Shown in pieces: positions 26,401-60,647 of a DNA stretch of 64,000 nucleotides. Where the stretch lies: NCBI GenBank assembly GCA_037447605.1, contig CM074813.1, forward strand, positions 62,001 to 126,000, in the 5' to 3' direction. Each line of letters starts with the position of its first letter. The first letter of the stretch is position 1. A program made the translations under genes and the position numbers. Under the pieces are notes generated by a model. The model did no database searches. It was given only the letters and a program-made list of their open reading frames with translations, and was not told the origin of the DNA. The DNA is from Zygnema circumcarinatum SAG 698-1b (lineage: Eukaryota; Plantae; Zygnematophyceae).

Positions 26401-29400
26401 GTCTGCTTGTTCACTTTCTCGTCCTGGCAGTGGTGTTGCATGTCGTTGTATCACCGCATTTTTTAGGAAAAATAAAATTCCTGTGTCTGTCGGAATATAC
26501 TCGTCCATTTTATCTTTGAAGAAAAAATTGAGGTCATGAAAAATAGTACTCTTGCGGTCGTGAGACAGTCAGATTTGCAACGCCTTGCAAAAGGAAATCG
26601 TACAATGGCATGGTTTCCAGGGTTGATCAAACGCTGAAACGCAATATGAATCTGACAGGCGTGCTACTTGGTGTGAATTGCAGCTGGCCTATCTCAAGCT
26701 GCGCAAGATGGAGATGACGCTGGATGACAAAGATGACGGGGAAACAGACCAAACCTCAGATGGTTCGAGCCCAATGGAAGAGACGGACGAGAAAAAGTCA
26801 AAACGACGCAGTGTTCTCTCTTGGCTAAAGCTTAAGGTGCCCCATCCGCACCCCCATCTCTGTATTTGAGTTGAACCTGTGCGCTATAAACGAGAGGGGA
26901 TGTCACAAAGCCTCCAACCCTTCTCGCTCCGTATCAGTCATGCTCTTTCTCGCCAGATAACCAGCAGCAGCATCGTTCGCCATGGGGAGGGGTGTGCAGC
27001 GGAGCAGCTCGCCATGGCCCGGCGAGGGCGGCGACGCGGCGGGCGGCCTCTCCGGGGGGAAGGCCTCGCGCGCGCTGTGGCCGGGGTCCCCCGGGAAGGG
27101 CGGCGACCCGGGGGAGGCCCCGCGGCGCCTCTCGAGCCCCGCCCACCGCCGCTCGGACGCGGCCGCCGCGCTCATGGCCTTCGCGGAGCCGCTCATGCAG
27201 CCCACGCAGGCGGGGGACCTCTTCAGCGTGGCCGGGAAGGCCCGCCTGCCTGTAAGGCTCTCTCTACCTTGTCTCCCTCTTCCACTGGCTCTGCCTGACA
27301 CAGAACGACGACGACGTAGTAGGTTGTTACATTCATGGTATGGATGACAAGCAAATTTACCCTGGAGAAGATGCTTGAATAAGGAAGGCGGATGTGAACT
27401 TCGTGGTCACCATGCACGGGGAACCTTTTCAAGTATCACACCTTCGTTACTGCGAAAAAGTGCAGCTGGCTTGGGAAGCAGTGACGGGGATAATTGTGCC
27501 TTAACGTTCGCATGTTTAGCTCTGATTGTCAAGTCTCTTCAAGCAAAGACTCGCTGACTCAAACTTCCTTTTTGGATGCAGAGTAATGAGAATGTTGCAG
27601 ACCAGATAGAGCTTTTGAAGGAGCAGCTAAAAATCTTGTCTGGCGAGGTAGCCATGTGCGGCAGCAACCACAAGCGGCTCTCCGAACACATGAGCCCGGG
27701 CAGCGCGGCTCAGGTCGAGGAGAAGCAGGTGCTTCCCCGACTGCCCACTCCCCGCCACGCACTGTCCGAATGCTCATTCAAACGGGGGAATATGACATGG
27801 AACTTGTTTCTCTGTTCCTTTAGGCATGAAAACCACTAGATGTCAGGCTACTCGCAGGCTGCTTGCTCGGAAGGGCAGCTGAGAAAGGGAGTCGGTGCGC
27901 TCTGGGGGAAGTCGTGGCAGGCTGAGGATGGTTTGCCTTTGATGCATTGCGTACTCGTGTAGTATTTTGTCCTTTTATGTCATCGCTGCTTCTGAGTGTG
28001 TCTGAAGCTTCATATAGTGGTTTGGGAATAATGCTTGCTCGATGTTTCCTTGATTATGTTGGGGATAGACTTATAACCAACACCGCTTCGTGCACTTTCC
28101 CTTGCAGGCTTTCAACTTGGTTTCAGTAGTGTCACCATTTGTTTTGTTGCTTAACATGACAAGTAGATGTGGTTGGTGGAGTATGGGGATTGCAGCGTCT
28201 TGAAGACGAAATCAGGGAAAAGAAGAAGCAAATGAGAGTGTTAGAACAGAAGATTGAGACTGCCCAACTCATGCAGCCCACTTCGGAAGGGGACGTCGAG
28301 GAGATGGCCAAGGTGCCCTTCTCCTCCCCTCCGCATGCAGCATGAGGATCCGCATATGGAAGGCGTGTCCAAATTTGGCCATTCTGATCGAAATTTTTGG
28401 CATTCATTGGTTATCTGAACGTGCTGATCTGATCTGAACGTTCTTTGTGCAGACGATTGCAAAGTTGAAGGCTTTGCTGAGCGAAAAGACATTTGACACG
28501 GAGGTGAGGCCCGTCTATTTCATTCTGTCATGCATTTTCTTTTTTGTTTTAGACTTTCACGTTCCTGTTTTTGTGTGGCGCCATTTGTAACAACATTTAC
28601 GCAGTTCCTGAAGACTTCTGTGGTGTTCGCTTGCAGATCATAAATGCAGATAATCGAATATTGCAAGATTCATTGCGTGCAAAGGTATACACACTAGCCG
28701 GTGCTTCATGTACTTGTATTGATTTTTCTCATCTGCCCATCAAAGGTCTATTCTGAGCCAGCCTAATTACGACAAGCGCCGTGCAAAGTCTGCACTACTC
28801 GCCGGGGCTTTTGTTCTTGTTTGCCGCTGAGCGAAGCTTGTTTCTGACGTTTATTGAGGAGCATGGCAGACGAAGCAGAACAACCGGCTGCTGGAGGAGG
28901 TGAACCTCCTGCGCGTAGAGCTGACCCGCGCTATTCAAGGGCCCGCCTACGCGAGCGGCCCGCCCTCGCCCTCGCTCGCGGCCAATGGCCACCGCGGGGA
29001 GGGGGCGGCCGCGGCCCGGGACGACCTGCAGCAGGGCCGGGACGGGGCGCCTGCTCATCTCAAGGCTGGGGACGGGTCTGACCTCGCTGATGGAGGAGGC
29101 GGAGAGCAGAAAACTATTTCATCAAATGAGCTATCAGCATTTTCTTACGTGAGTCCAAGTTGCAACTGTCAATCATTTTGAAGTTTGCTACGCGTGAATC
29201 TCCTTCCTGGAAAGCAAGTGAAGAGCCATACCAGAAAAGAGGTTCATTCGGCAGCTTGGAATTCATAGCAAGTTTATCGGAATGAACTGTGTGGTTTTGG
29301 AGAAACTGCAAAAGGTGAGCAGGTGCTTTATCTCGCTGACAACGTCTAGTCTCTGGCTGGCAAACAGACGCCGGAAGTGGATAACCTGCGCATGCAGCTG

Positions 29401-31102
29401 AGCCTGATGGCGGAGGAGCGCGACATGCTCGCCTCCCAGCAGCAGCAGCTCACTCGGGCGCTGGCGGAGGCCCGTGCGCTCGCGGTGATGCGGCCCGGCG
29501 CGGGCGGCAGCAGCCACCTGCTGGACGGTCCGTACAAGGGCGCCGCGGAGGCCCTCCCGGACGTGGCGCGCCTCGTGGAGCAGCTCGGGGCGGCGCGGGA
29601 CCGCGAGGAGAAGCTCCGTACGGCCCTGGCACGGAAGGAGACTCTGGAGGCAGAGCTGGCGGCAGCCAAAGGGCAGATGGGGACATTCACTGCTGAGGTT
29701 TCTGGGGCTTCTGAACAGTCGGACAATGCAGAAAGGCCAAGTTCTAACGGAGATGTGCAAGTGGTGCTTACCTCGCTCGAGGCAGCGTTGACGGCTAAAG
29801 CTGAACAGGTTGCCGACCTGCAGAGGGAGTTAGAGGAGGGCAAGCAGAGGGAGGCCGGCTTGGAAAGTGACCTGGCTACGATGTGGGTGCTGGTGGCGGA
29901 GCTCCGACGCCAAAGTGCCACCTCACGCGAACTTGCTCCTTTGCCTGATAGACCAAGGCCGGATAACTTTGATACCAAATCACAAATAGAAGTCCTTCAA
30001 CAGCAGCTGGCACAAGAGCACGAGCGAAACGAGGAATTGCAGACACAGTTGGCATATATGAAAGTGCGTTTAATCTCCTAATCGAAGATCCTTTTCAGTT
30101 CAGAACTTCCCATGAACATCTTTGTCTTGGATAGTATAAGCAGATTGTTATGAAGAAAATTATGTTATAGCATCGTAGAACTCCTCTTGAAGCCTCGAAA
30201 AGAGGTGGGATCCATCGGTGCAGGGCAATAGCTTGGAAAGCTTATCGTTAGCCTCGCTGGAGGAACTCGCGAATCTACATCAGGAGGCGCTGGCAAAGCT
30301 CGCTTTCTTCAAGGCAGGAACCTGCTCCCCGCCACTGCCGCCTGGTGAGCTGCTGCCAATCTTCTCTTGTACAGCATGACAGAGAGACCACTCTCTTGTG
30401 CTGCGGGTTGGCACCCTTTGGGGGGCTTAGTTGTCTGACGAAGAAAGTGGAGCAGAGGATGGTTTGCAGGTGAAGGAGCAGGAGAGACAACAAGATGAAG
30501 CAGGGTCTGCGGACAAGAGTGTGCAGGAGGGAATATGGGCCCATTTGGAGGAGTTCAAGGCGTCCACTCTATGCAGGGGTTGCTTCGAATCAGCCATCTC
30601 CACACGCCTTTTGCCCTGCGGCCACACCTGCTGTAAGCAGCTCGGCACAGCCCACCTGTCTACCCTTCAAGTTGCACGAATTTTAGTCCTGCACCTTGCT
30701 TGGGCAGGAGGGGTCGAGTCTTGCTTGGGCCTAGCCTTCTTCCTCGCAGTAGGGAAATGGGTGAAAGTCCCCGGGACCTCGTCAGACTCCTACAGAGTCC
30801 TGAATGTTTCCGTGCCTACTGAGGTTTCGGGGAAAGGGATGCTAGTCTTTCAGTTATTCGCTGCAAGGGACACGCTACTCGCAGTTTTATGCATTTCAAT
30901 TGTGGTTGCTGGCCCTCCGTCTGGAAGCACAATGATGCACTGGATGTCGGAAATTGATGATGGTACCCGTCCTGTTTTTGTGGGGATGACTCTTTCCTTC
31001 ACAGTGTGTGGAAACTGTGTTCAGTCTGCAAGCAGCTGTCCAACGTGTCTCGCCCCGATTGCAAGCTGGCAGGAGATGCCAAGTACTGCAGCTGTAACTT
31101 AG
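20487..31102 (+). CDS. Kinesin-7 (CENP-E-like, plant KIN7/MKRP type) with C-terminal C3HC4 RING finger, more than 20 exons
   Basis: [13 protein letters not shown]-loop [22 protein letters not shown], switch [10 protein letters not shown], switch [120 protein letters not shown]...PCGHTCLCGNC...CPTC is split by an intron. Confidence 0.95.
24001..24097. repeat. Degenerate 10-bp tandem repeat (TTATAAGCCC) inside a kinesin intron
   Basis: Ten units: ttataagccc atatacgccc ttgtaagccc ttataaaccc ttatatgccc gtataagccc ttaagccc ttgtaagcca ttataagccc ttagaagccg. Confidence 0.9.
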
Positions 31103-31877
31103 CCACGGTAAGAAAACTGGATTTACGTATGTGTTGTTTCGATTGACTTGCAACTTCTCCGTTTATTGTGACCACATTGTTTACGGTAACAGTGCAAATA
31201 GGTGTGAGCAATAATGGCAGACCCTTGACTGGCGACAGTTATCGAAACAGTGCAGCTGATGTCTTGATGGGATGCTGTGGGCACGAAACACAGTCGCGGT
31301 GGCCGCGCGGTGATGCGACGTGGGCTGGGTTGCTTGTGGCGCAGGTGGCACTTTTTGACGGTCTTGTGACAGTGTGAATATGGCTCCTAGGGCTCATCCG
31401 ACTCATTTTAGTGACTCATTTTTCAATAGATTTCTGATTGCGACTGGCACATTTCGTTGCTCGATTTGTTATTCGTGGTGGAGGGAAGCTGGCGGAGGAG
31501 ACAGTGTGCCGCACTCAATAAGTTGGAATAAGGGGAGGTCTTCATTGTTAGGGAGGGATAAGGAAACTAATTTTTTTCACAAAAAAAAAAAATAACTTGG
31601 GTGTCAATTTTTTACAAACTGCCGCGAGATACAGTCGACAAACTAAACCATCCTGTCCCGGGTGCGAGCACAATTACAAGGGAGGTACGCCGCGGACTCC
31701 AAGCGGAGACCGATCCTTGACTTTCGCAACGAGGGTATTGATGCTCGTCACTGAAGTGTGGCAAAGTTTTGGGCCTGACAGTGCGCGCTCTTGGAATAAA
31801 CGATGATGCGGGGAAATGAGTCTGTCGGAACAAATCGTTCATTTTGAAAACCAAGAATCAGCCCATGTTCATAGAAA

Positions 31878-34854
31878 TCAATAGGATTGCTGCGCAGATG
31901 AAGGTCGCAACTGCGCATGTCTCTTAACTTCCGCAGCGATGTAGTCCTTGAGCAGCCTATGCCCTCGATCTCTAAGGCTGGCGCGGTACTTTCTGTCCAC
32001 AAATATACGGCTCGCGTTGACGCCGGGGCAGGGGTGGTACCAGAGGCGCAGACTGTACCCGCAGTGCAGCGCTGCCTCCTCCCGCCCCGCGCGCTGCCGC
32101 CGCTCGTTGCCCGCCTCCCTGTGGCAGCCGCAGCGTCCCGTGTCTGCGTCCGTCGCCTTCTCGTCAAACCGTCCAGTTCCGCACACTCTGTCGATCAGTT
32201 CTAACTTGTTGTCCTTCCCGTAGACAAGATCTGCCATGTCCAAGAAGAGAAGTTGCAGTACTTGTCCAAATTGGAATAGGAGAAACAACTGAAACATATA
32301 TTACTCTACATCAAGCTTGTCATAAAAATGGCCATTAAAAAAGAATCACATCCGCGCGAAGGACGGCTAAAACGTTGATTCGGTTGAACTGCTAAGTTAA
32401 ATCTCTGAGAAGAAGCCGTACCTTCTACGTATCGTTCCTCTGAGTCACTTCGGAAGGCCATTTGGGACTCCCAAAGCACTGGGGCGTAGTTGCGAACCGC
32501 ACGAAAGGACGAAGCCCCGTTCAGCCACTTGGCATCTTGCTCACTGTACAGGCGGTACATTGGGACCTGCACTTCATCAAGATCACCCATGTTAGAGCAG
32601 TCTATACAGCAATTCTAAAAAAGTATATCTAGTGCTTTGCCTTTTTCCAATTTAACTCTAGGCACAATCATGCACACAACATCATTACAAAAAGGGGGGT
32701 ACTAGCGGGAAAAAGGACGGGAGTTCCAAGGGTGGATTCCGGCAGGAGTTGTCAGGATTTTCCAATATGAACCAGAGGGCCAGGGAATCCAGGTTAACAT
32801 GAGCACAATAACAACATCAAACTCATCAATTTCATAACCTGAATCAACGAGCCAGCCTGTCCATCGGAGTTTGAGTCAACCTGGCAGTCTGATCGAATTT
32901 GAACTTCAATCCACCTGAACAGATTGTTCACGTTTGAGTTGATTCACTGCCATGGTCGTTTCATTTGGTCGTCTGATTAGTTATAAGTCTGAAGTGATGG
33001 TTAGATTAACCTCGAACACTCAGACTTTGATTGATTGGAAAGCCATGCTCACTGCGGTTCCATCTGGGTGTCAGCCCGATGCTAGATTGATCTAACAGCC
33101 TCATCAATTCAAGCTGCCCGCATCAATGTTGAACCTCGAGCGATTTGGTTATCAGAATGATGCAGCTTGACTCCAATCCACACCAGATCGGACCAATGAA
33201 TCTTGTGATCCGACCATTCCAGATCAACTGCGAATTCAAATCCGGGTTGTGGCACCTCAGAATGATGTAATCTCCAAGCTTGCCAAACAATGGAGGTGCA
33301 GGAAGCACCTTGGTGAGGCAGCAATCCAAGACAGGGATCACTTTACCTTGAAGTACTTCAGCCCTTGCTCCTCCCAACGCTTCGCAGCCTCTATGGTAGC
33401 ATTCCATGCCTCACTTGTGAAGAACTGATTTCCGTCAAATGCAAGGATCCATCGAGCACCTTCGGCAATCCCATGACGCATCATCTCGTTCCGCGCTGCA
33501 TTTTGTGCTGCTTCCACAAAAGACAACCATAGTTACGTCAGGAACTGCAAAATGGACACAACCAGTAAGCCTTCACACGGTTAAATGATAGCTGCGAATT
33601 CTATTGAAGGAAAGACCGGGGAGCTGAACAGGGTTGCTGTCCACCAAAAATGACAACGGAGCACAGGTCCATGAAAAAGATTGAAACCGGACAGCTCAAA
33701 GGAGCAACTAAAACACCCAACCAAGAAGTGGACGAAGCAATAGATGAAGTGAAATATTAAAGTTGCTATATTTCATAAGGTTGAATGCGGGCAAGCAAGT
33801 CGTGTAGCCCAGATAGCCAAAGATAAAGAGAGAGAGTCCAGATGGGTCTAGCCTCACCTTCCTCCCATGTCATCTGCTCAGTACGACCTATTTTCTTGCA
33901 GTAACTTCCAATTCAGCGGCATTACGAACGCTTTCTATTTCCTTAGGCAGAACACACGTGGCATGGATTTGGCAAAAAAAAAGCATCACAGCCAGAGGTA
34001 CAAATTGAGAAGACTCGGTACTTTACAACATGGATGATTGGAAATCACATGTATAGGCTGACCTGTTACTAAATGTATCCATGAATCACGTGGAAACGCC
34101 ATGAGACTTGTAAAATTGACGCGCCTCACGATGATATCCTGCAGCCAAAGCAATTGAATGAGCCCATGGCTGACTCCGCTTCTGAGACTGCGAGGATGAG
34201 GTCATGCCCATAGGACACTTTACGCTAGATTTGCATCAGTGACTAGACGAATACGAGGGCAAAGCATATTCAAAAGCACATGTGCAAGATGCTTCATAAA
34301 AAAAAAAGGGGGGTGGGGGGGCAATAATGAACCGCAACAGTCACCTGCATAGTATAGCCCGCACGAATGAGAGCATCCAATAAGAGCGCTCGCTCAGTCT
34401 CGTTTACGATATTGTTCAGCACCCAAATCTTCCGACAGTCAGGAAAATCAGGTTCATACTTAAGGGCATATCGCGTATTTTTTAGCAGCTGTCCAAAGCA
34501 TTGCAGAGGAGGCATGTTGTTTCCGATTAATCGGTACAAAAAGAACTTAGGAGTTAATGGGTTCTTCCGTCCCGTTATCGAGGTCCCCTCTGAAGATGTG
34601 GAAAAAAACCCAATGCGGTTCTTTGAAGGCGACCGGCTGTCAGAGGTCTCTGCAGTAACGCCAACAAATTGGCCGGAGGCAAGCTCTCTTTGAACGCAGT
34701 CTCTGGTTCGTTGCAACGCTCTCATAATGTCTTCACGCAAAAAATATAGAGAGACGTAAAGCAAGCCGACGCCTAGCAACAGCAGGCTTGCATTCACGAG
34801 CCCGCATATTGAACGTGACTCAGGAGTGGTGGGATTTCGTTTGAATTTGCTCAT
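31878..34854 (-). CDS. Uncharacterised 414-aa type II membrane protein, putative GT-A-like glycosyltransferase, 5 exons
   Basis: Exons 34854-34345, 34138-34063, 33507-33347, 32566-32422 and 32230-31878 total 1245 nt and splice in frame at GT-AG sites. A single N-terminal TM helix (ASLLLLGVGLLYVSLYFL) is followed by LYRLIGNNMPPLQ..GQ, EPDFPDCRKIWVLNNI, LVTAQNAARN, ARWILAFDGNQFF, YFKVPMYR, ESQMAFRSD, YGKDNKLEL and CGYSLRL. Confidence 0.85.
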
Positions 34855-35508
34855 TGCGAGGTAAGTACGCTTCGAGAACAAGAAATAGGAAATTCCTGTA
34901 ATGTGGAAGAGGCCGACAGAATGCGGTACATTAACGACCTTTCCTTGGAGAAGATACTATAATGGCATTATCCACATTCACAGTTAAGCGCTGCCTAAGG
35001 GCTATGATGATACGCCTGTGAAAAACACGCAGTGCACGTGGTATAAAATGAATTGAAGCCTGTTGAAAAAGTCCGATTATTGGACTCCATTCATGAACCT
35101 ATCCTGCATTGCGTGGCAATACCTCCGGGACTATACGGTAGCAGTCACAAGTTCTGCATCTACAAATCCGAAATGTGAGGATGACGCACGGCCCCTACCA
35201 GGACCACGCCCTCGTCGCCTCAGCAGACCGCCCTCCCGCGCGTCCGCCCGCGCCTCCCCTGCGCGACCCCGCCCGCCATCGCCCTCGACCTCGCCCCTCC
35301 CTTTCCCTCCCTCTCGCTCTCTCTCCCTCTCTCTAGCTCTCTCTCCCTCCCTCTTCCCGCCCTTCCCCGCGGACCCCACCGTACATAGTACTGCATCGTC
35401 ACATACTGTACCGAGTGGCCCGACTTGGCGATACGATATCGATACGGAAGCGCCGAGGGGCGCCGCCGGGGGGGAGAGGGAGGAGCGCGGGAGCAGCCGT
35501 CGGTCACC

Positions 35509-50127: not shown

Positions 50128-51635
50128 GTCCCTGATTGGCCCACTGCCCACTGAGAGGCCTGACTGACTACGTGGAGCCTTCGGATAGGTCAACCGATGA
50201 TAATCGGCGGCATCTTGCGGCGCTTCCGAGTGTGCCTCGCTGGATGGTGTGCCGTTCCGTGGGCCGCCAACGCATGGCGCCGCCGTCTCTCAATCTCCGT
50301 TGGCAGCTTCTGAATTCCGTTGATCCGTGACACGGAAGATGCATACGTCAAGTACAATCGAACAGACGCAAATCCGTCGAACGCCGCCCCGTTACGCTAC
50401 AACGCACTCCTTGGGGTGGTAAATACGAGGACCCCCCACTGTACTATACGGCATTGTACGATAAGGCACGGTACGATACTTGCGGGAGGCTCTCCGTCAG
50501 TTCCGTCCGTCAGAAACTGCCGGGCGGTTTGCCTGTGGGAAGCCTTCGACTCCGCCACGTGGAGGATCCTGATTGGCGCGCGAATTAAAGTTTATACTTC
50601 AGGAAAAAACCCGAAAAAAAAAGCCTAGGGTCTAGAGCCTAGAGCCTAGAGCCTCGAGCTGCCTGTCCGTACATCCCCCCGGCCTTGACCGGCCCCGCGG
50701 GCGGGCGGGCGGGCCCGCAGGCCGCGGCCGCTGGCGGGCTGGACAGAATCGCATCCATCGTACGTTGCCGTATGGCTGCCGTATGGCGACCGTACAGATG
50801 CCGTACGCGTGTCTGTACGGCTCAGTGTCAGAGGGCGCGGCGCGCAGGCGGTGAGTGGGCCTGCGCGCGCCGCGTGGCGGGTGGCTGGCGCGGGGGAGGG
50901 ACCGTCCGTATTGCCGTACGTCGCCGCATTAAAGCCGTGCCCGCCGGCAGCCACGTGGGGCCGTGATGGCGTCATGCACGTGCGGCCGCCCTCGAGCCGC
51001 CGAATCCGAGCGCGGCGCGGCGCGATCCGACGGCTGCGCGCGCTCTGCGCTGCGGGGCGGGGCGGGTCCCGCCGCGGGCAGCAGCCGGCGGGCGGGCGGG
51101 CAGGGCAGCCTCAAAACGTTTCCCGCCGGCTGCCCGCTGCCCGAACCGCCACCCACAGGGTCTCGGGCAGCACTAACCGCCTCGGGGAAAATTTGTCGCT
51201 TCTGTGGAAAAATCCGATATTTCTTTTTTCCCGGGCGGCGGGTCGCTGCGTGAGCGCGCCGGGCGGGAGGCTGCTGTTCGTACGGTACGGACGGGAGGGA
51301 GGGAGGGAGGGAGGGAGGTTGGTGGGGCGGGCCCGCGCCGCCCTTTAGCGAGGGGAGGGGGAAAGTGGCTGGCAGATTGCGTTTGACGGCGAGAGGCGGC
51401 GAGGAGAGGGAAAGCGAGGCGGAGGGAGGAGGGAGACGGGGGGAGGTCGCTAAACGGACATCTGTGCAGCCATTTGCTGGGGAGGAGTGGTTAACAGATG
51501 TCCTTTTAGCGGCAGGGGGTGTAGGTATTTATTTAGTAGCGGGTGGGCGGTGTCTGTGGAGGCCCGGGTAGAGGGGGTTGTGGGAGAGGGAAGGAGGGAG
51601 GGCCTGATAGTTTGGAGAGGTCGGGTCTAGGAACC

Positions 51636-52910
51636 ATGGCGGCCGTTGGAATGCAGTTTGGGAATGTGGGTGGAGGGATGGAGAACAATATGGACCTGCT
51701 CGAGTTGATGGGGAAGCTTGTGGCGGCTGGCGCCTCTCCAAAGCCCGCCCCTCCGGCTCCCAGTCCGAACCCCGCCGAGCTCCTGCAGTCGATGTCTAAC
51801 TCTCTGTCGAGGCAGAGGGACCTCCTCATGCTGAACTCCCTGAAGGAGGAGCTCATGATGCGCTCCCCGAACCTCACTTTGGAGCAGCTGTGCTACTACG
51901 ACCGCCTGAACAACCTCCAACAGGCGCTCCTTTCCAACCCCCTCCCAGCGGCCCCTTCCGCCGTCGACTACGTACAGCAGCTGGCTAACCGGAAGCGATC
52001 TGCTGCAGCTATGGCTTTTGAGCAGCCCTTCGGCGGGGAAGATCTGATGTTCCCGATGTCAGTGAAGCATCCTAAGGTCGAGCCGCTGGACATTGTGGGT
52101 GCCGGGGGAGGGTTCCGGAGAGTTGTGGACGACATGGGCGGCATGAACGTCTTCCAGCCGCAGCAGCAGCAGCAGGCCGTTCAGCAGCCGCGCTACAAGG
52201 GTGTGCGGCAGCGCAAGTGGGGCAAGTGGGTGTCGGAAATCCGCGAGCCGAAGAAGCGGTCGCGCATTTGGCTCGGCTCGTACGACTCCGCGGAGGACGC
52301 TGCTAGAGTGTATGACGTGGCTGCCAGGATGCTTCGCGGGAAGAAGGCCACTCTCAACTTCCCCAACAGCTTTCGTGAGGTGCCTCTCCCTCCTGCGACT
52401 GCGGAGACCTTGATCAAAGCCAGCAAGGCTGCAGCAGCAGCCCTCGACCTTCATCCTTCTGAAAGGTTCTCTCCGCTCTCTCCTGAAGTGGCGGACGATG
52501 AAGAAAATGAAGAGGCTGAAGACTTCAAGGCACTCGATGGGAGTGACGGTGAAGGAGACGTGAAGAAGGACGATGATTCTGCGACGTCGTATTCCTCTTC
52601 TGAGCGCATTGAGCCTGTGACCTCTCCGACGGGCCCTCTGTCCAACATTCCCATGCGCGGCTCCCATTCGCCGTCTTATACCTCTGAGAGAAAGCCGCAA
52701 GGCCCCGTATACAGCTTGGACCAGGTGTTGGGAGTGGAGTCTTTCGGAAAAACTACCGCTTTGAACCAGGGACTGATTCGCAGCAGTCACGTGCAGGCCA
52801 TACTTTCTGCTGCTGAAGCGCAAGCTGCAGCGTGGAAGGAGGCTGCACAGGCGGCACAGGAAAATGTGCCCATGTGGGCGTTCGGAGATTACGCGCACCA
52901 CTTCGAGTGA
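51636..52910 (+). CDS. Intronless DREB-subfamily AP2/ERF transcription factor (424 aa)
   Basis: AP2 domain [58 protein letters not shown] with V14/E19 (DREB type). Post-domain [19 protein letters not shown], acidic region, C-terminal MWAF (LWSF-like) motif, and a basic NLS-like RKRS. Confidence 0.95.
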
Positions 52911-58421: not shown

Positions 58422-60647
58422 TCAGCGTTCCTTCCTCGGATTTTTAGACTGGTCATAAAAAAGCCCAATTCTTGGAGTGTTCCCATGGAGCCAAAATCGC
58501 AGCAGTGCCGTGTACACCTTGTGGCGAGCTCCGAGTGTCGGCAGCCCCATCTCCCTCAAATCCTCCCTTGTCAAGAAAGGGAGTACTTGCCAATCCACTT
58601 CATGTTTTTCAAAAATTGGAACCACACTCTCCAATCCTAAATCCTCCAACCAGCGACCCACCTTGCTCAATTTGTACATTTTGGAGCATTTAATTTCCGG
58701 GTTCTCTGCCCCCAATTTACCGTCATGAAAATCCCTCGCCTGGTCATTAATAACAGGATCCTCCAGACACGTGACAACAGCCATGGCCATGGCAAACGAC
58801 GCATCCCTCTCTTCCACGTCCGCCCGAAAGCTTATCTGTTCCTTCTCCTCTGGCCAGACAGACGGAGAGACCCATTCGATTCCCAACCTGCCCAAGGGAA
58901 AATCTACCTCCTTTCCTTCGACGGACCTTTCTGCCATCAACTGTTCACTTCCGGCTTGTGAGAGTCTGACGTTGTTCACTGCTAGCGAATAATCCTCTCC
59001 ACCCACAGAAGTGGTTCCTCTAGCATTTGCTGAAGCCATCGACGCTGGGGGAGCAGCTAATGCCAATATCATACCACACGAGGGAGCCATGCCTGCACAA
59101 GACGACGTTCGACCATGTCCATTTCTTGAATGTAGCTCCGCGACAGCCTGCTGTTGACTAACTGTCATTGATACTTCATGGCCAGAGACCCTCTCCTCCG
59201 TGGCATCCTTCATGCCCTGGTAGTGATAGCTAGATCTAGATATAGCATTATCATAATTTTCTTTTTGATAATCCTTAATTTTAAGCTGACCATGTGCCAG
59301 CTGACGCGCACAATCCTTCCTTTCGTCAGCTCTTGGGTCTCCAATGCACACAGCTCCAATAGAATGCGGGTGAAGCACATCAGACAAAGGCCTTCTCTCC
59401 GTTTCAGAATGACAGAAAAGCCTCGGTCCCATAGCCAGCTCAAACAGCGCCTGGACACCCGGCTCTAAATCAGACATGTCCAAGTCTCCGCCAGCAATTG
59501 CCTCCGCTCTTATATCTGGACCATCGCCTGTTGACCCTTTTCTCTCATTATATCTTTCTCCGTCTCCTTTCTTTCCTTTCTCTCCTTTCTCTTGCCTCTC
59601 TCCGGATGTTGCCTCCTCTTCAATAGGTTCACATCCAATGTCCATAGCTGCCCAAGCTTTCGCTGCGAAAGTTCCATAGGAGTCAGATGCGGCACAGCTC
59701 GTCGGCGATATCCGCTGCGTTTCATCCAAAGTCGACAATTGCTCGTCCATCATTCCCACATTTTCCATAGCTGCATTCCGCAAGTCACACTTTCCTTTCT
59801 TCGATTTTCTTGAAACTTTGAAATCGTTACGCTGCTTGATGACGCCCATATTTCCGTTTCCTCTCGCCTTCTTTAATTTGAACCCGTCTGGGCTCCTCAT
59901 CAATCGCAGCTTCAAACCGCCTGCCAGTTCACTTTCACCACTAGCAGAATTTACTTTCAAGTTGTCCTCTACTCGTTGACCTAAAAGATTATGAAGCACA
60001 TCTTGATGTTCCTTCAATTCTCTTTTCAAACACTTAAGGCCCTGAGGTTTTTTGCACTTCCCTGCGCTGGTCTTCTTCAGTTTCTTCACAGCTTTCGCTT
60101 CACCACACGCAGGTTCTTTCCCGTCTCCTCTATCTCCTTTTCCTTCAGCTTTCCGTACTCCACTCGCATTTCCTTCTCCTTCCACCACATCGCATACATC
60201 CATTTTACTGACATGCTTACTTTTTCCGAAGCTTCTCGCTCTGGCATTCCCCTTCAATCGCTTCAAATCTCCTCCCTGAAAGCCTCCACCTCCTACTATC
60301 TCTCCGTTTTCCATCCCTTTACCATCATTCCGGCCTTTTCCTTCGCCCTCGTGCAGTTTATTTTCCTCCTCATTTCCCGCCATTTTCTTCCTCTTCATCA
60401 CTCTCTCATATGTTCGCAGTTCGATCTTGGCTTCCTTCTCTCCTTCCCTCTCCTTGTCGCACAGGCCTCTCTCCGCCAGTTTCTCTCTCTGTAGAGTCTT
60501 AAAAGCTATGAGAGTCGGCGGGAGCGAGGAAGGAGGGCGGGCTCGCCCAAGCACGCCGGCCAAGGAAGCTTCCTTCCCTCGTCCCCTGTGCTCTTCCTCC
60601 ACGTCAGCCCTAGGGCGCTTTCTCATCTTCATGCTGCTCGCAGGCAT
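58422..60647 (-). CDS. 741-aa single-exon protein with a C-terminal SAM domain and long K/E/G-rich, probably disordered N-terminus
   Basis: Uninterrupted 2.2-kb ORF. C-terminal KVGRWLEDLGLESVVPIFEKHEVDWQVLPFLTREDLREMGLPTLGARHKVYTAL fits the SAM consensus (W L..LGL..Y...F....ID...L..LT.EDL..MGI..LG.R.KI..AL). Confidence 0.85.
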   Translation of the reverse strand: MPASSMKMRKRPRADVEEEHRGRGKEASLAGVLGRARPPSSLPPTLIAFKTLQREKLAERGLCDKEREGEKEAKIELRTYERVMKRKKMAGNEEENKLHEGEGKGRNDGKGMENGEIVGGGGFQGGDLKRLKGNARARSFGKSKHVSKMDVCDVVEGEGNASGVRKAEGKGDRGDGKEPACGEAKAVKKLKKTSAGKCKKPQGLKCLKRELKEHQDVLHNLLGQRVEDNLKVNSASGESELAGGLKLRLMRSPDGFKLKKARGNGNMGVIKQRNDFKVSRKSKKGKCDLRNAAMENVGMMDEQLSTLDETQRISPTSCAASDSYGTFAAKAWAAMDIGCEPIEEEATSGERQEKGEKGKKGDGERYNERKGSTGDGPDIRAEAIAGGDLDMSDLEPGVQALFELAMGPRLFCHSETERRPLSDVLHPHSIGAVCIGDPRADERKDCARQLAHGQLKIKDYQKENYDNAISRSSYHYQGMKDATEERVSGHEVSMTVSQQQAVAELHSRNGHGRTSSCAGMAPSCGMILALAAPPASMASANARGTTSVGGEDYSLAVNNVRLSQAGSEQLMAERSVEGKEVDFPLGRLGIEWVSPSVWPEEKEQISFRADVEERDASFAMAMAVVTCLEDPVINDQARDFHDGKLGAENPEIKCSKMYKLSKVGRWLEDLGLESVVPIFEKHEVDWQVLPFLTREDLREMGLPTLGARHKVYTALLRFWLHGNTPRIGLFYDQSKNPRKER

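Follow-up and report, generated by a model that had tools for sequence, protein, structure and literature searches.

A 64,000-nucleotide stretch of the Zygnema circumcarinatum SAG 698-1b genome (positions 62,001 to 126,000 of contig CM074813.1; hereafter the window, in whose numbering all positions are given) carries on its minus strand, at 31878-35275, an intron-containing gene whose product is probably a membrane-anchored glycosyltransferase (GT). Public data for the gene came from Logan contigs of four runs (X1 to X4) in three studies. Candidate exons were first picked from three minus-strand reading frames and their boundaries were then fixed by these contigs, which skip the stretches 32231-32421, 32567-33346, 33508-34062 and 34139-34344. 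On the minus strand all four skipped stretches start with GT and end with AG. Logan word depth is 30-176 on the exons and 0-13 in the introns; given this contrast and the skipping of the introns, the runs contain spliced RNA of the gene, although nothing in their records states it. Exon 1 (34345-34895) comprises 41 nt of 5′ untranslated region (UTR) and 510 nt of coding sequence (34854-34345, residues 1-170), and codes for the cytosolic tail, membrane helix, stem and first third of the conserved domain. Its joint to exon 2 (34138/34345) is seen in four runs. Intron 1 (34139-34344, 206 nt) is followed by exon 2 (34063-34138, 76 nt; residues 171-195 and the first base of codon 196) and intron 2 (33508-34062, 555 nt), whose acceptor is the later of two AGs in tandem. 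Exon 3 (33347-33507, 161 nt; residues 196-249) carries the motifs QNAARN (33488-33505) and FDGN (33428-33439). Beyond intron 3 (32567-33346, 780 nt) lie exon 4 (32422-32566, 145 nt; residues 250-297 and the first base of codon 298), with VPMYR and WESQMAF (32453-32473), intron 4 (32231-32421, 191 nt), and the coding part of exon 5 (31878-32230, 353 nt including the stop codon; residues 298-414), with YGKDNK (32205-32222), a Cys-rich insert and CGYSLRL (32043-32063). The coding exons total 1245 nt, equal to 414 residues and a stop. The original prediction, made from the letters of the sequence, had joined five exons in frame to give a 414-residue protein; this matches the spliced contigs exactly, and the transcription of the exons that it had put forward as a check is seen in four runs from three studies.

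Upstream of exon 1, the X3 and X4 contigs stop at 34896 and resume, identical, from 35200 (77 letters in X4). A 5′ UTR exon is thereby given a minimum extent of 35199-35275, and a 5′ UTR intron of 303 nt (34896-35198, GT..AG) is placed by the loose contig ends and the splice dinucleotides. This intron is spliced in two runs and is crossed unspliced by a contig of X2, and the gene may have two 5′ forms, through intron retention or a second start. The frame is open through the upstream exon, with no in-frame ATG in its 300 nt, and the exon sits in GC-rich, GA-repeat-rich DNA. Within intron 3, a minor alternative joint (32946 to 33347, skipping 400 nt at a depth of 9.5) occurs in run X1 only and could reflect either an alternative acceptor that is seldom used or incomplete processing of the transcript. 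At the other end of the gene the 3′ UTR extends below 31878. Contigs of about 5 kb from three runs (window about 27350-32230) start in exons 4 and 5 and reach positions over 4.3 kb lower than 31700, across a region that holds a plus-strand RING-finger open reading frame (ORF), and point to convergent genes with overlapping 3′ ends or to a very long 3′ UTR. The neighbouring ORFs, namely this C3HC4 RING finger (30431-31102, plus strand), an AP2 ORF (51543-52910, plus strand) and a SAM ORF (58422-60647, minus strand), are ordinary eukaryotic or plant-lineage genes. No second copy of the gene was found in the window by tblastn with five relatives, the five colinear segments being one copy.

A Kyte-Doolittle scan returned a single hydrophobic segment in the product, a predicted transmembrane helix at residues 16-39 (34738-34809, minus strand; maximum 2.17 over 19 residues), and no other. 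Basic residues (K3, K5, R6 and R14) stand ahead of the helix and a Ser/Thr-rich stem follows it, with a conserved domain of about 310 residues beginning near residue 102. The lumenal part has eight Cys and four N-x-S/T sequons. The set of Cys is kept among the algal relatives and not in the bacterial ones, a usual sign of adaptation to the secretory pathway. Type II Golgi glycosyltransferases are built in this way, with a short basic tail, one signal-anchor helix, a stem and then the catalytic domain in the lumen, and the algal relatives are alike in this respect; the scan thus agrees with the tail, single helix and stem that had been predicted. The sequence shows a type II (N-in) topology, and this topology, the conserved lumenal Cys and the N-glycosylation sequons together point to probable residence in the Golgi.

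Relatives were sought with single exons of the window gene or with database orthologues, and the protein searches covered targets of 0.55-1.75 times the query length. None of the five exon translations matched Pfam or NCBIfam. A Pfam scan of ten full-length relatives returned nothing relevant, 24 alignment members showed no match to the domain even at E<=10, and sequence searches of the PDB (exons 1, 3 and 5, and a family profile) gave chance matches only. A phmmer search of 1.84 billion representative proteins with the last exon yielded only 23 matches. Full-length relatives include three paralogues from Mesotaenium endlicherianum, many copies from several species of Closterium and a protein of Klebsormidium nitens; others come from a single MMETSP transcript and from a small number of transcriptome or metagenome contigs that bear no label. 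The relatives in Mesotaenium and Closterium are nearest to the window gene. The five exons are colinear with the full-length relatives, and the Mesotaenium orthologue (P0003) is 61-74% identical exon by exon. No land-plant or fungal protein was among the named matches of three database searches. All named eukaryotic relatives are labelled ‘hypothetical’ or ‘unnamed’, bar the one from Klebsormidium, which UniRef calls a ‘Glycosyltransferase 2-like domain-containing protein’. A literature search for the domain combination, or for zygnematophyte glycosyltransferases from horizontal transfer, found no description of the family, and no mention was found of six gene or protein identifiers of relatives. 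With no Pfam or NCBIfam match and no land-plant protein among the named matches, the expectation that the protein falls outside any named plant family is upheld for the libraries searched. In two metagenomic relatives of exon 1, a Glyco_hydro_47 (mannosidase) fragment (L001:764-1087 and L002:764-1087) is found about 700 bp upstream on the opposite strand, and the contig neighbours of a divergent relative, P0041, are all unannotated.

Gene models of Closterium and Mesotaenium have breaks or inserts at the window gene’s four exon boundaries. The metagenomic relatives P0001 and P0002 lose their match at the end of exon 1 (...GYT(L/M)Q), and the partial Closterium model P0007 starts exactly at the first residue of exon 2. 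The N-terminus of P0011 is foreign as far as exon 3, extra sequence is inserted in P0028 and P0029 where exons 3 and 4 meet, and the divergence of P0020 begins where exon 5 follows exon 4. From these coincident breaks we infer that the introns are probably old and common to the algal relatives. Several Closterium models seem to contain annotation errors: in P0006 the motif EALTEAVTG is repeated 11-fold where exons 2 and 3 join, in P0020 and P0029 sequence is inserted at exon boundaries, and P0012 and P0021 run together with Pirin or JmjC genes.

The conserved domain, which has no name and is here called X, is also found in bacteria. With the algal alignment as tblastn query against one genome per species, 17 bacterial loci were recovered (E 4e-32 to 3e-24; 31-35% identity over about 220 residues). 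The taxa represented are Methylorubrum/Methylobacterium, Nocardia, Nitriliruptoraceae, a cyanobacterial metagenome-assembled genome (MAG), Salinivirgaceae, Opitutaceae, Kaistia, Hyphomonas, Natronospira and Spirochaetaceae. Pairwise BLASTP aligned P0003 with the Hyphomonas domain at E=2e-27, and exon 1 of the window gene with the Nitriliruptoraceae protein L004 at 44% identity (E=6e-17). The bacterial translations carry YRIIGNDLPPRH, NNNGARN, WVLPWDGNCF, EEPQIAFR, YGRRPKVELL and GWVARL. The series of motifs that the original prediction had listed for the algal protein is present in full and in order in the window exons; together with significant similarity across the domain, this places the protein in the X-domain family. 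The ‘alginate lyase family proteins’ of Methylorubrum salsuginis, Nocardia spp., Kaistia nematophila, Natronospira elongata and Hyphomonas johnsonii are thus true homologues of the algal protein, sharing its motif order and 13 invariant residues.

An Alginate_lyase domain (PF05426) was detected in 7/11 bacterial proteins scanned (E down to 1e-75), mostly C-terminal to the X domain and once N-terminal. The original prediction had linked the motifs to bacterial and fungal proteins with such a lyase domain. The bacterial half of this link proved accurate, the motifs being near-identical and PF05426 frequent; for the fungal half, no match was seen among proteins of 0.55-1.75 times the query length. 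By their labels, only 59% of the members of one ESM Atlas cluster that carries PF05426 are bacterial. Pfam scans found no lyase domain in the window gene or any algal relative, nor in the Salinivirgaceae and viral members, and PF05426 is therefore a frequent partner of the family and does not define it. Absence of the lyase domain and presence of a membrane anchor, both noted beforehand for the algal protein, are confirmed by these scans and by the hydrophobicity scan. Compared with their algal homologues, the bacterial proteins are soluble and multidomain, with PF05426 and/or GT1 and GT2 modules and an insert of about 30 residues before the N..RN helix; the algal protein in turn has an anchor, a stem and a Cys-rich insert. 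In Hyphomonas johnsonii (L017:81-7151) the order GT2-GT1-X-lyase is found in one protein of 2356 residues, and in a Salinivirgaceae MAG (L011:3-5960) the order is GT1-GT2-X. Both giant polypeptides resemble complete multi-step polysaccharide polymerases. Neighbouring bacterial genes encode GT2 and GT1 enzymes, a Wza-type exporter and a pyruvyl-transferase-like protein. These neighbours and the fusions indicate that the X module is part of exopolysaccharide assembly machinery.

Viral members were also found. Eight IMG/VR loci (L020-L027), on contigs of 15-105 kb, encode stand-alone copies of about 287 residues that are 24-31% identical and keep the same invariant residues. In the ESM Atlas one viral cluster is mostly Uroviricota and a second partly Nucleocytoviricota by label, and a Megaviridae ‘GT family 2’ protein in BFVD belongs to the viral relatives. 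A tblastn search of 50,697 GenBank phage records with a bacterial domain found nothing. The viral proteins have neither anchor nor fusion partner. In a maximum-likelihood tree of 35 sequences, whose root is undefined, a long branch carries all eukaryotic members as a single clan (support 100); the viral sequences are nested within the bacteria, away from the algal clan. Among named eukaryotes the family is confined to streptophyte algae; this confinement, the introns in common and the long branch agree with one old acquisition and not with a recent transfer or contamination. The suggestion of horizontal acquisition therefore accords with the patchy distribution and the tree, whilst its direction is not given by a tree of undefined root.

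The fold was predicted with AlphaFold for the domain of the Mesotaenium orthologue (P0003:80-389), from an alignment of 24 algal and bacterial sequences. The predicted local distance difference test (pLDDT) of the model was 92.7 and its predicted template modelling score (pTM) 0.91. It has a Rossmann-like alpha/beta/alpha sandwich with the strand order of GT-A enzymes. All 43 of the 43 Foldseek matches in the PDB at E<=0.001 were GT-A glycosyltransferases, including GalS1, AvpGT, COLGALT1, LARGE1, TarS, RmlT, LH3, GlcAT-P and SpsA. The best ESM Atlas matches were to the cluster of bacterial ‘alginate lyase family’ proteins, with a template modelling (TM) score of 0.77, and to a cluster of viral hypothetical proteins, with 0.74/0.83; GT2 clusters came next, with 0.52-0.60. 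A GT-A fold, which had been suspected from the motifs, is thus well supported by the orthologue’s model, Foldseek and the ESM Atlas, and the expectation holds at the level of fold. A link to any particular GT family is not well supported. The top match, at E=1.6e-5, is GalS1 (PDB 8d3t), a plant Golgi GT92 with a role in wall polysaccharide synthesis and the same order of tail, transmembrane helix, stem and GT-A domain. The GT7-like beta-1,4-GalNAc-transferase domain of human CHSY3 (PDB 9q8z chain B) is among the closest known systems. The inverting GT-A enzymes of GT2 (SpsA, TarP, TarS, RmlT, K4CP and the hyaluronan and heparosan synthases) have no detectable profile similarity to the family, and the GT2 hidden Markov models (HMMs) PF00535, PF10111 and PF13641 do not recognise it. 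The protein accordingly belongs to the unnamed X-domain family and, by its predicted fold, to the GT-A superfamily; it falls outside GT2 as defined by HMMs.

Conservation was assessed over 34 algal, bacterial and viral sequences, numbered as in P0003:80-389. Thirteen residues are invariant (N14, P18, Q24, E36, N49, N100, R103, N104, D122, G123, E184, Y203 and K208) and twelve nearly so (R10, G13, N28, W132, R156, Q186, F189, G204, G260, R264, L265 and R289). The window exons keep every one of them, in the order R..GN...P / Q / E / LN / N..RN / DG / E.Q..F / YG...K / G...RL. Exon 1 encodes strand beta-1 and its loop, YRLIGNNMPP (residues 107-116, 34507-34536, minus strand; model strand 6-12), in which N and P are invariant and R and G nearly so, and strand beta-2, WVLNN (residues 144-148, 34411-34425, minus strand; model strand 42-49), with invariant N49. 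This Asn may occupy the place of the nucleotide-binding Asp of GT2 enzymes. Exon 3 supplies N100, R103, N104, D122 and G123, in a region where the model has a helix (100-112) and after it a strand (117-122). Exon 4 supplies E184, Q186 and F189, and exon 5 Y203, G204, K208, G260, R264 and L265.

D122 ends the strand 117-122, with P or A at position -2, F, W or L at -1 and an invariant Gly at +1, the pattern of a degenerate DxD. In the Hyphomonas protein, ARN is followed after 14 residues by DSD in the GT2 module and after 16 residues by D in the X module. With this equal spacing and no gaps, the Asp of X falls on the last Asp of DxD; the match consists of two short stretches read directly, without statistical support, and hhalign finds nothing. 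The proposed DxD-like ‘DGN’ therefore has to be amended: the D-G is invariant, the Asn is not (viral members have DGG, DGA or DGN), and the Asp fits the last Asp of DxD better than the first. Relative to GT2 (PF00535/PF10111), the family has Pro or Ala in place of the first DxD Asp, Asn in place of the beta-2 Asp, and a C-terminal half of its own (YG...K, G...RL). D122 would handle the diphosphate or a metal ion, K208 and R264 may help to neutralise the diphosphate, and E184 (WESQ in the alga, EEPQ in bacteria) is, by position only, a candidate catalytic base.

The reading we favour, and consider a good deal more probable than its rivals, is that of a Golgi-lumenal glycosyltransferase with a secreted polysaccharide or glycoprotein as its acceptor. 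An expressed nuclear gene of a streptophyte alga would give a type II protein with a lumenal catalytic domain of about 310 residues. In the Golgi lumen a nucleotide sugar would be bound across the beta-1 loop (R..GN..P), the Asn that ends beta-2 and the N..RN helix. The Asp that ends beta-4 (FDG), as last Asp of a DxD, would hold the diphosphate directly or via a metal ion, and the invariant Lys (YG...K) and the Arg (G...RL) would help to neutralise it. The Glu of WESQ would act as base while the sugar is transferred, with inversion, to a secreted acceptor, be it a polysaccharide, mucilage or a glycoprotein. The bacterial form of the module is one unit of exopolysaccharide assembly proteins, fused to a PL5-type lyase and/or GT1 and GT2, and the algal form has a membrane anchor in exchange for these fusion partners. 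With no Pfam or NCBIfam match, no PDB sequence relative and a predicted GT-A fold, the original prediction of a putative member of an uncharacterised GT family gains support.

Several points weigh against this reading. The link to GT2 is structural only, at 8-13% identity and Foldseek TM scores in the PDB of 0.3-0.42. No GT2 HMM was matched by hmmscan of the window exons, of ten full-length relatives or of the 24 members at E<=10, and when hhalign compared the family alignment with one of 7 GT2 sequences, drawn from these bacterial loci, the probability was 0.1. The model is that of the Mesotaenium orthologue (61-74% identical per exon) and not of the window’s own product. There is no canonical DxD, with a single Asp kept, Asn and not Asp after beta-2, and no invariant His. 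Golgi residence is predicted from the topology, and no family member has a known activity, donor or acceptor.

The strongest of the rivals, which we nonetheless consider unlikely, keeps the GT-A fold and assigns it other chemistry, as a nucleotidyltransferase, a transferase of sugar phosphate or another group, or a polysaccharide-modifying enzyme that acts alongside the bacterial lyase-like domain. The degenerate DxD and the Asn in place of the usual Asp residues are compatible with such a role, and the usual bacterial partner is a lyase/epimerase-type toroid and not a transferase. However, the beta-1 loop differs from the G-x-G-x-R loop of nucleotidyltransferases, and the X module stands in series with GT1 and GT2 in polymerase-like megaproteins. 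Considerably less probable is that the GT-A module has lost catalysis and works as a scaffold or as a partner that binds glycan, in the manner of the CHPF subunits of chondroitin synthase. Inactive GT-A partners are documented in CHSY-CHPF complexes (PMC13389171), and the family lacks DxD, xED and C-terminal His motifs in their canonical form. Set against this, 13 mostly polar residues are invariant from phage to alga at about 30% overall identity, a pattern typical of an active site, and the viral copies of about 287 residues stand alone, with no fused partner.

A shade less probable again is membership of an existing CAZy or land-plant family for which the libraries used have no model. The UniRef label of the Klebsormidium relative speaks for this, but neither the exons nor the full-length relatives matched Pfam or NCBIfam, the family profile retrieved no sequence relative in the PDB, the named matches of the three database searches included no land-plant protein, and the six identifiers of relatives were not found in the literature. 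Finally, bacterial contamination or a pseudogene, to which the bacterial identity of the nearest non-algal relatives might point, has next to no probability: it is rejected on the spliced transcripts from three studies and the intact frame with all invariant residues, and four coding spliceosomal introns and a UTR intron, the eukaryotic AP2, RING and SAM neighbours, and the separate clan of eukaryotic members on its long branch also stand against it.

A bolder scenario goes beyond the glycosyltransferase assignment and is offered only tentatively, as we doubt that all of it will hold. The family would be a new one in the CAZy sense, with an atypical donor site (a single Asp, rich in Asn, Lys and Arg) that is perhaps metal-independent or uses a non-UDP nucleotide. 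It would have been acquired once by an early streptophyte from bacteria or a large DNA virus, gained a Golgi anchor, introns and disulfides, expanded in the Zygnematophyceae and been lost in land plants. Its product would build an alga-specific mucilage or wall polymer containing uronic acid, this last element being drawn from the bacterial fusion to a polyuronate-lyase-type domain.

What is new here is a GT-A family that is atypical, has no earlier description and includes a membrane-anchored form specific to algae. Its significance is moderate, since uncharacterised GT-A families are not rare and nothing is at odds with current understanding. The family is present in Klebsormidium, Mesotaenium and Closterium, was not seen in land plants and has no Pfam model; wall-gene inventories based only on models of the Pfam type would therefore miss it. 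Moreover, comparison with bacteria and viruses narrows the core of the family to a compact 13 invariant residues, and the fusion to a PL5-type domain suggests the class of acceptor. Methylorubrum, Hyphomonas and Nocardia are tractable hosts, in which the biochemistry of the family is directly testable.

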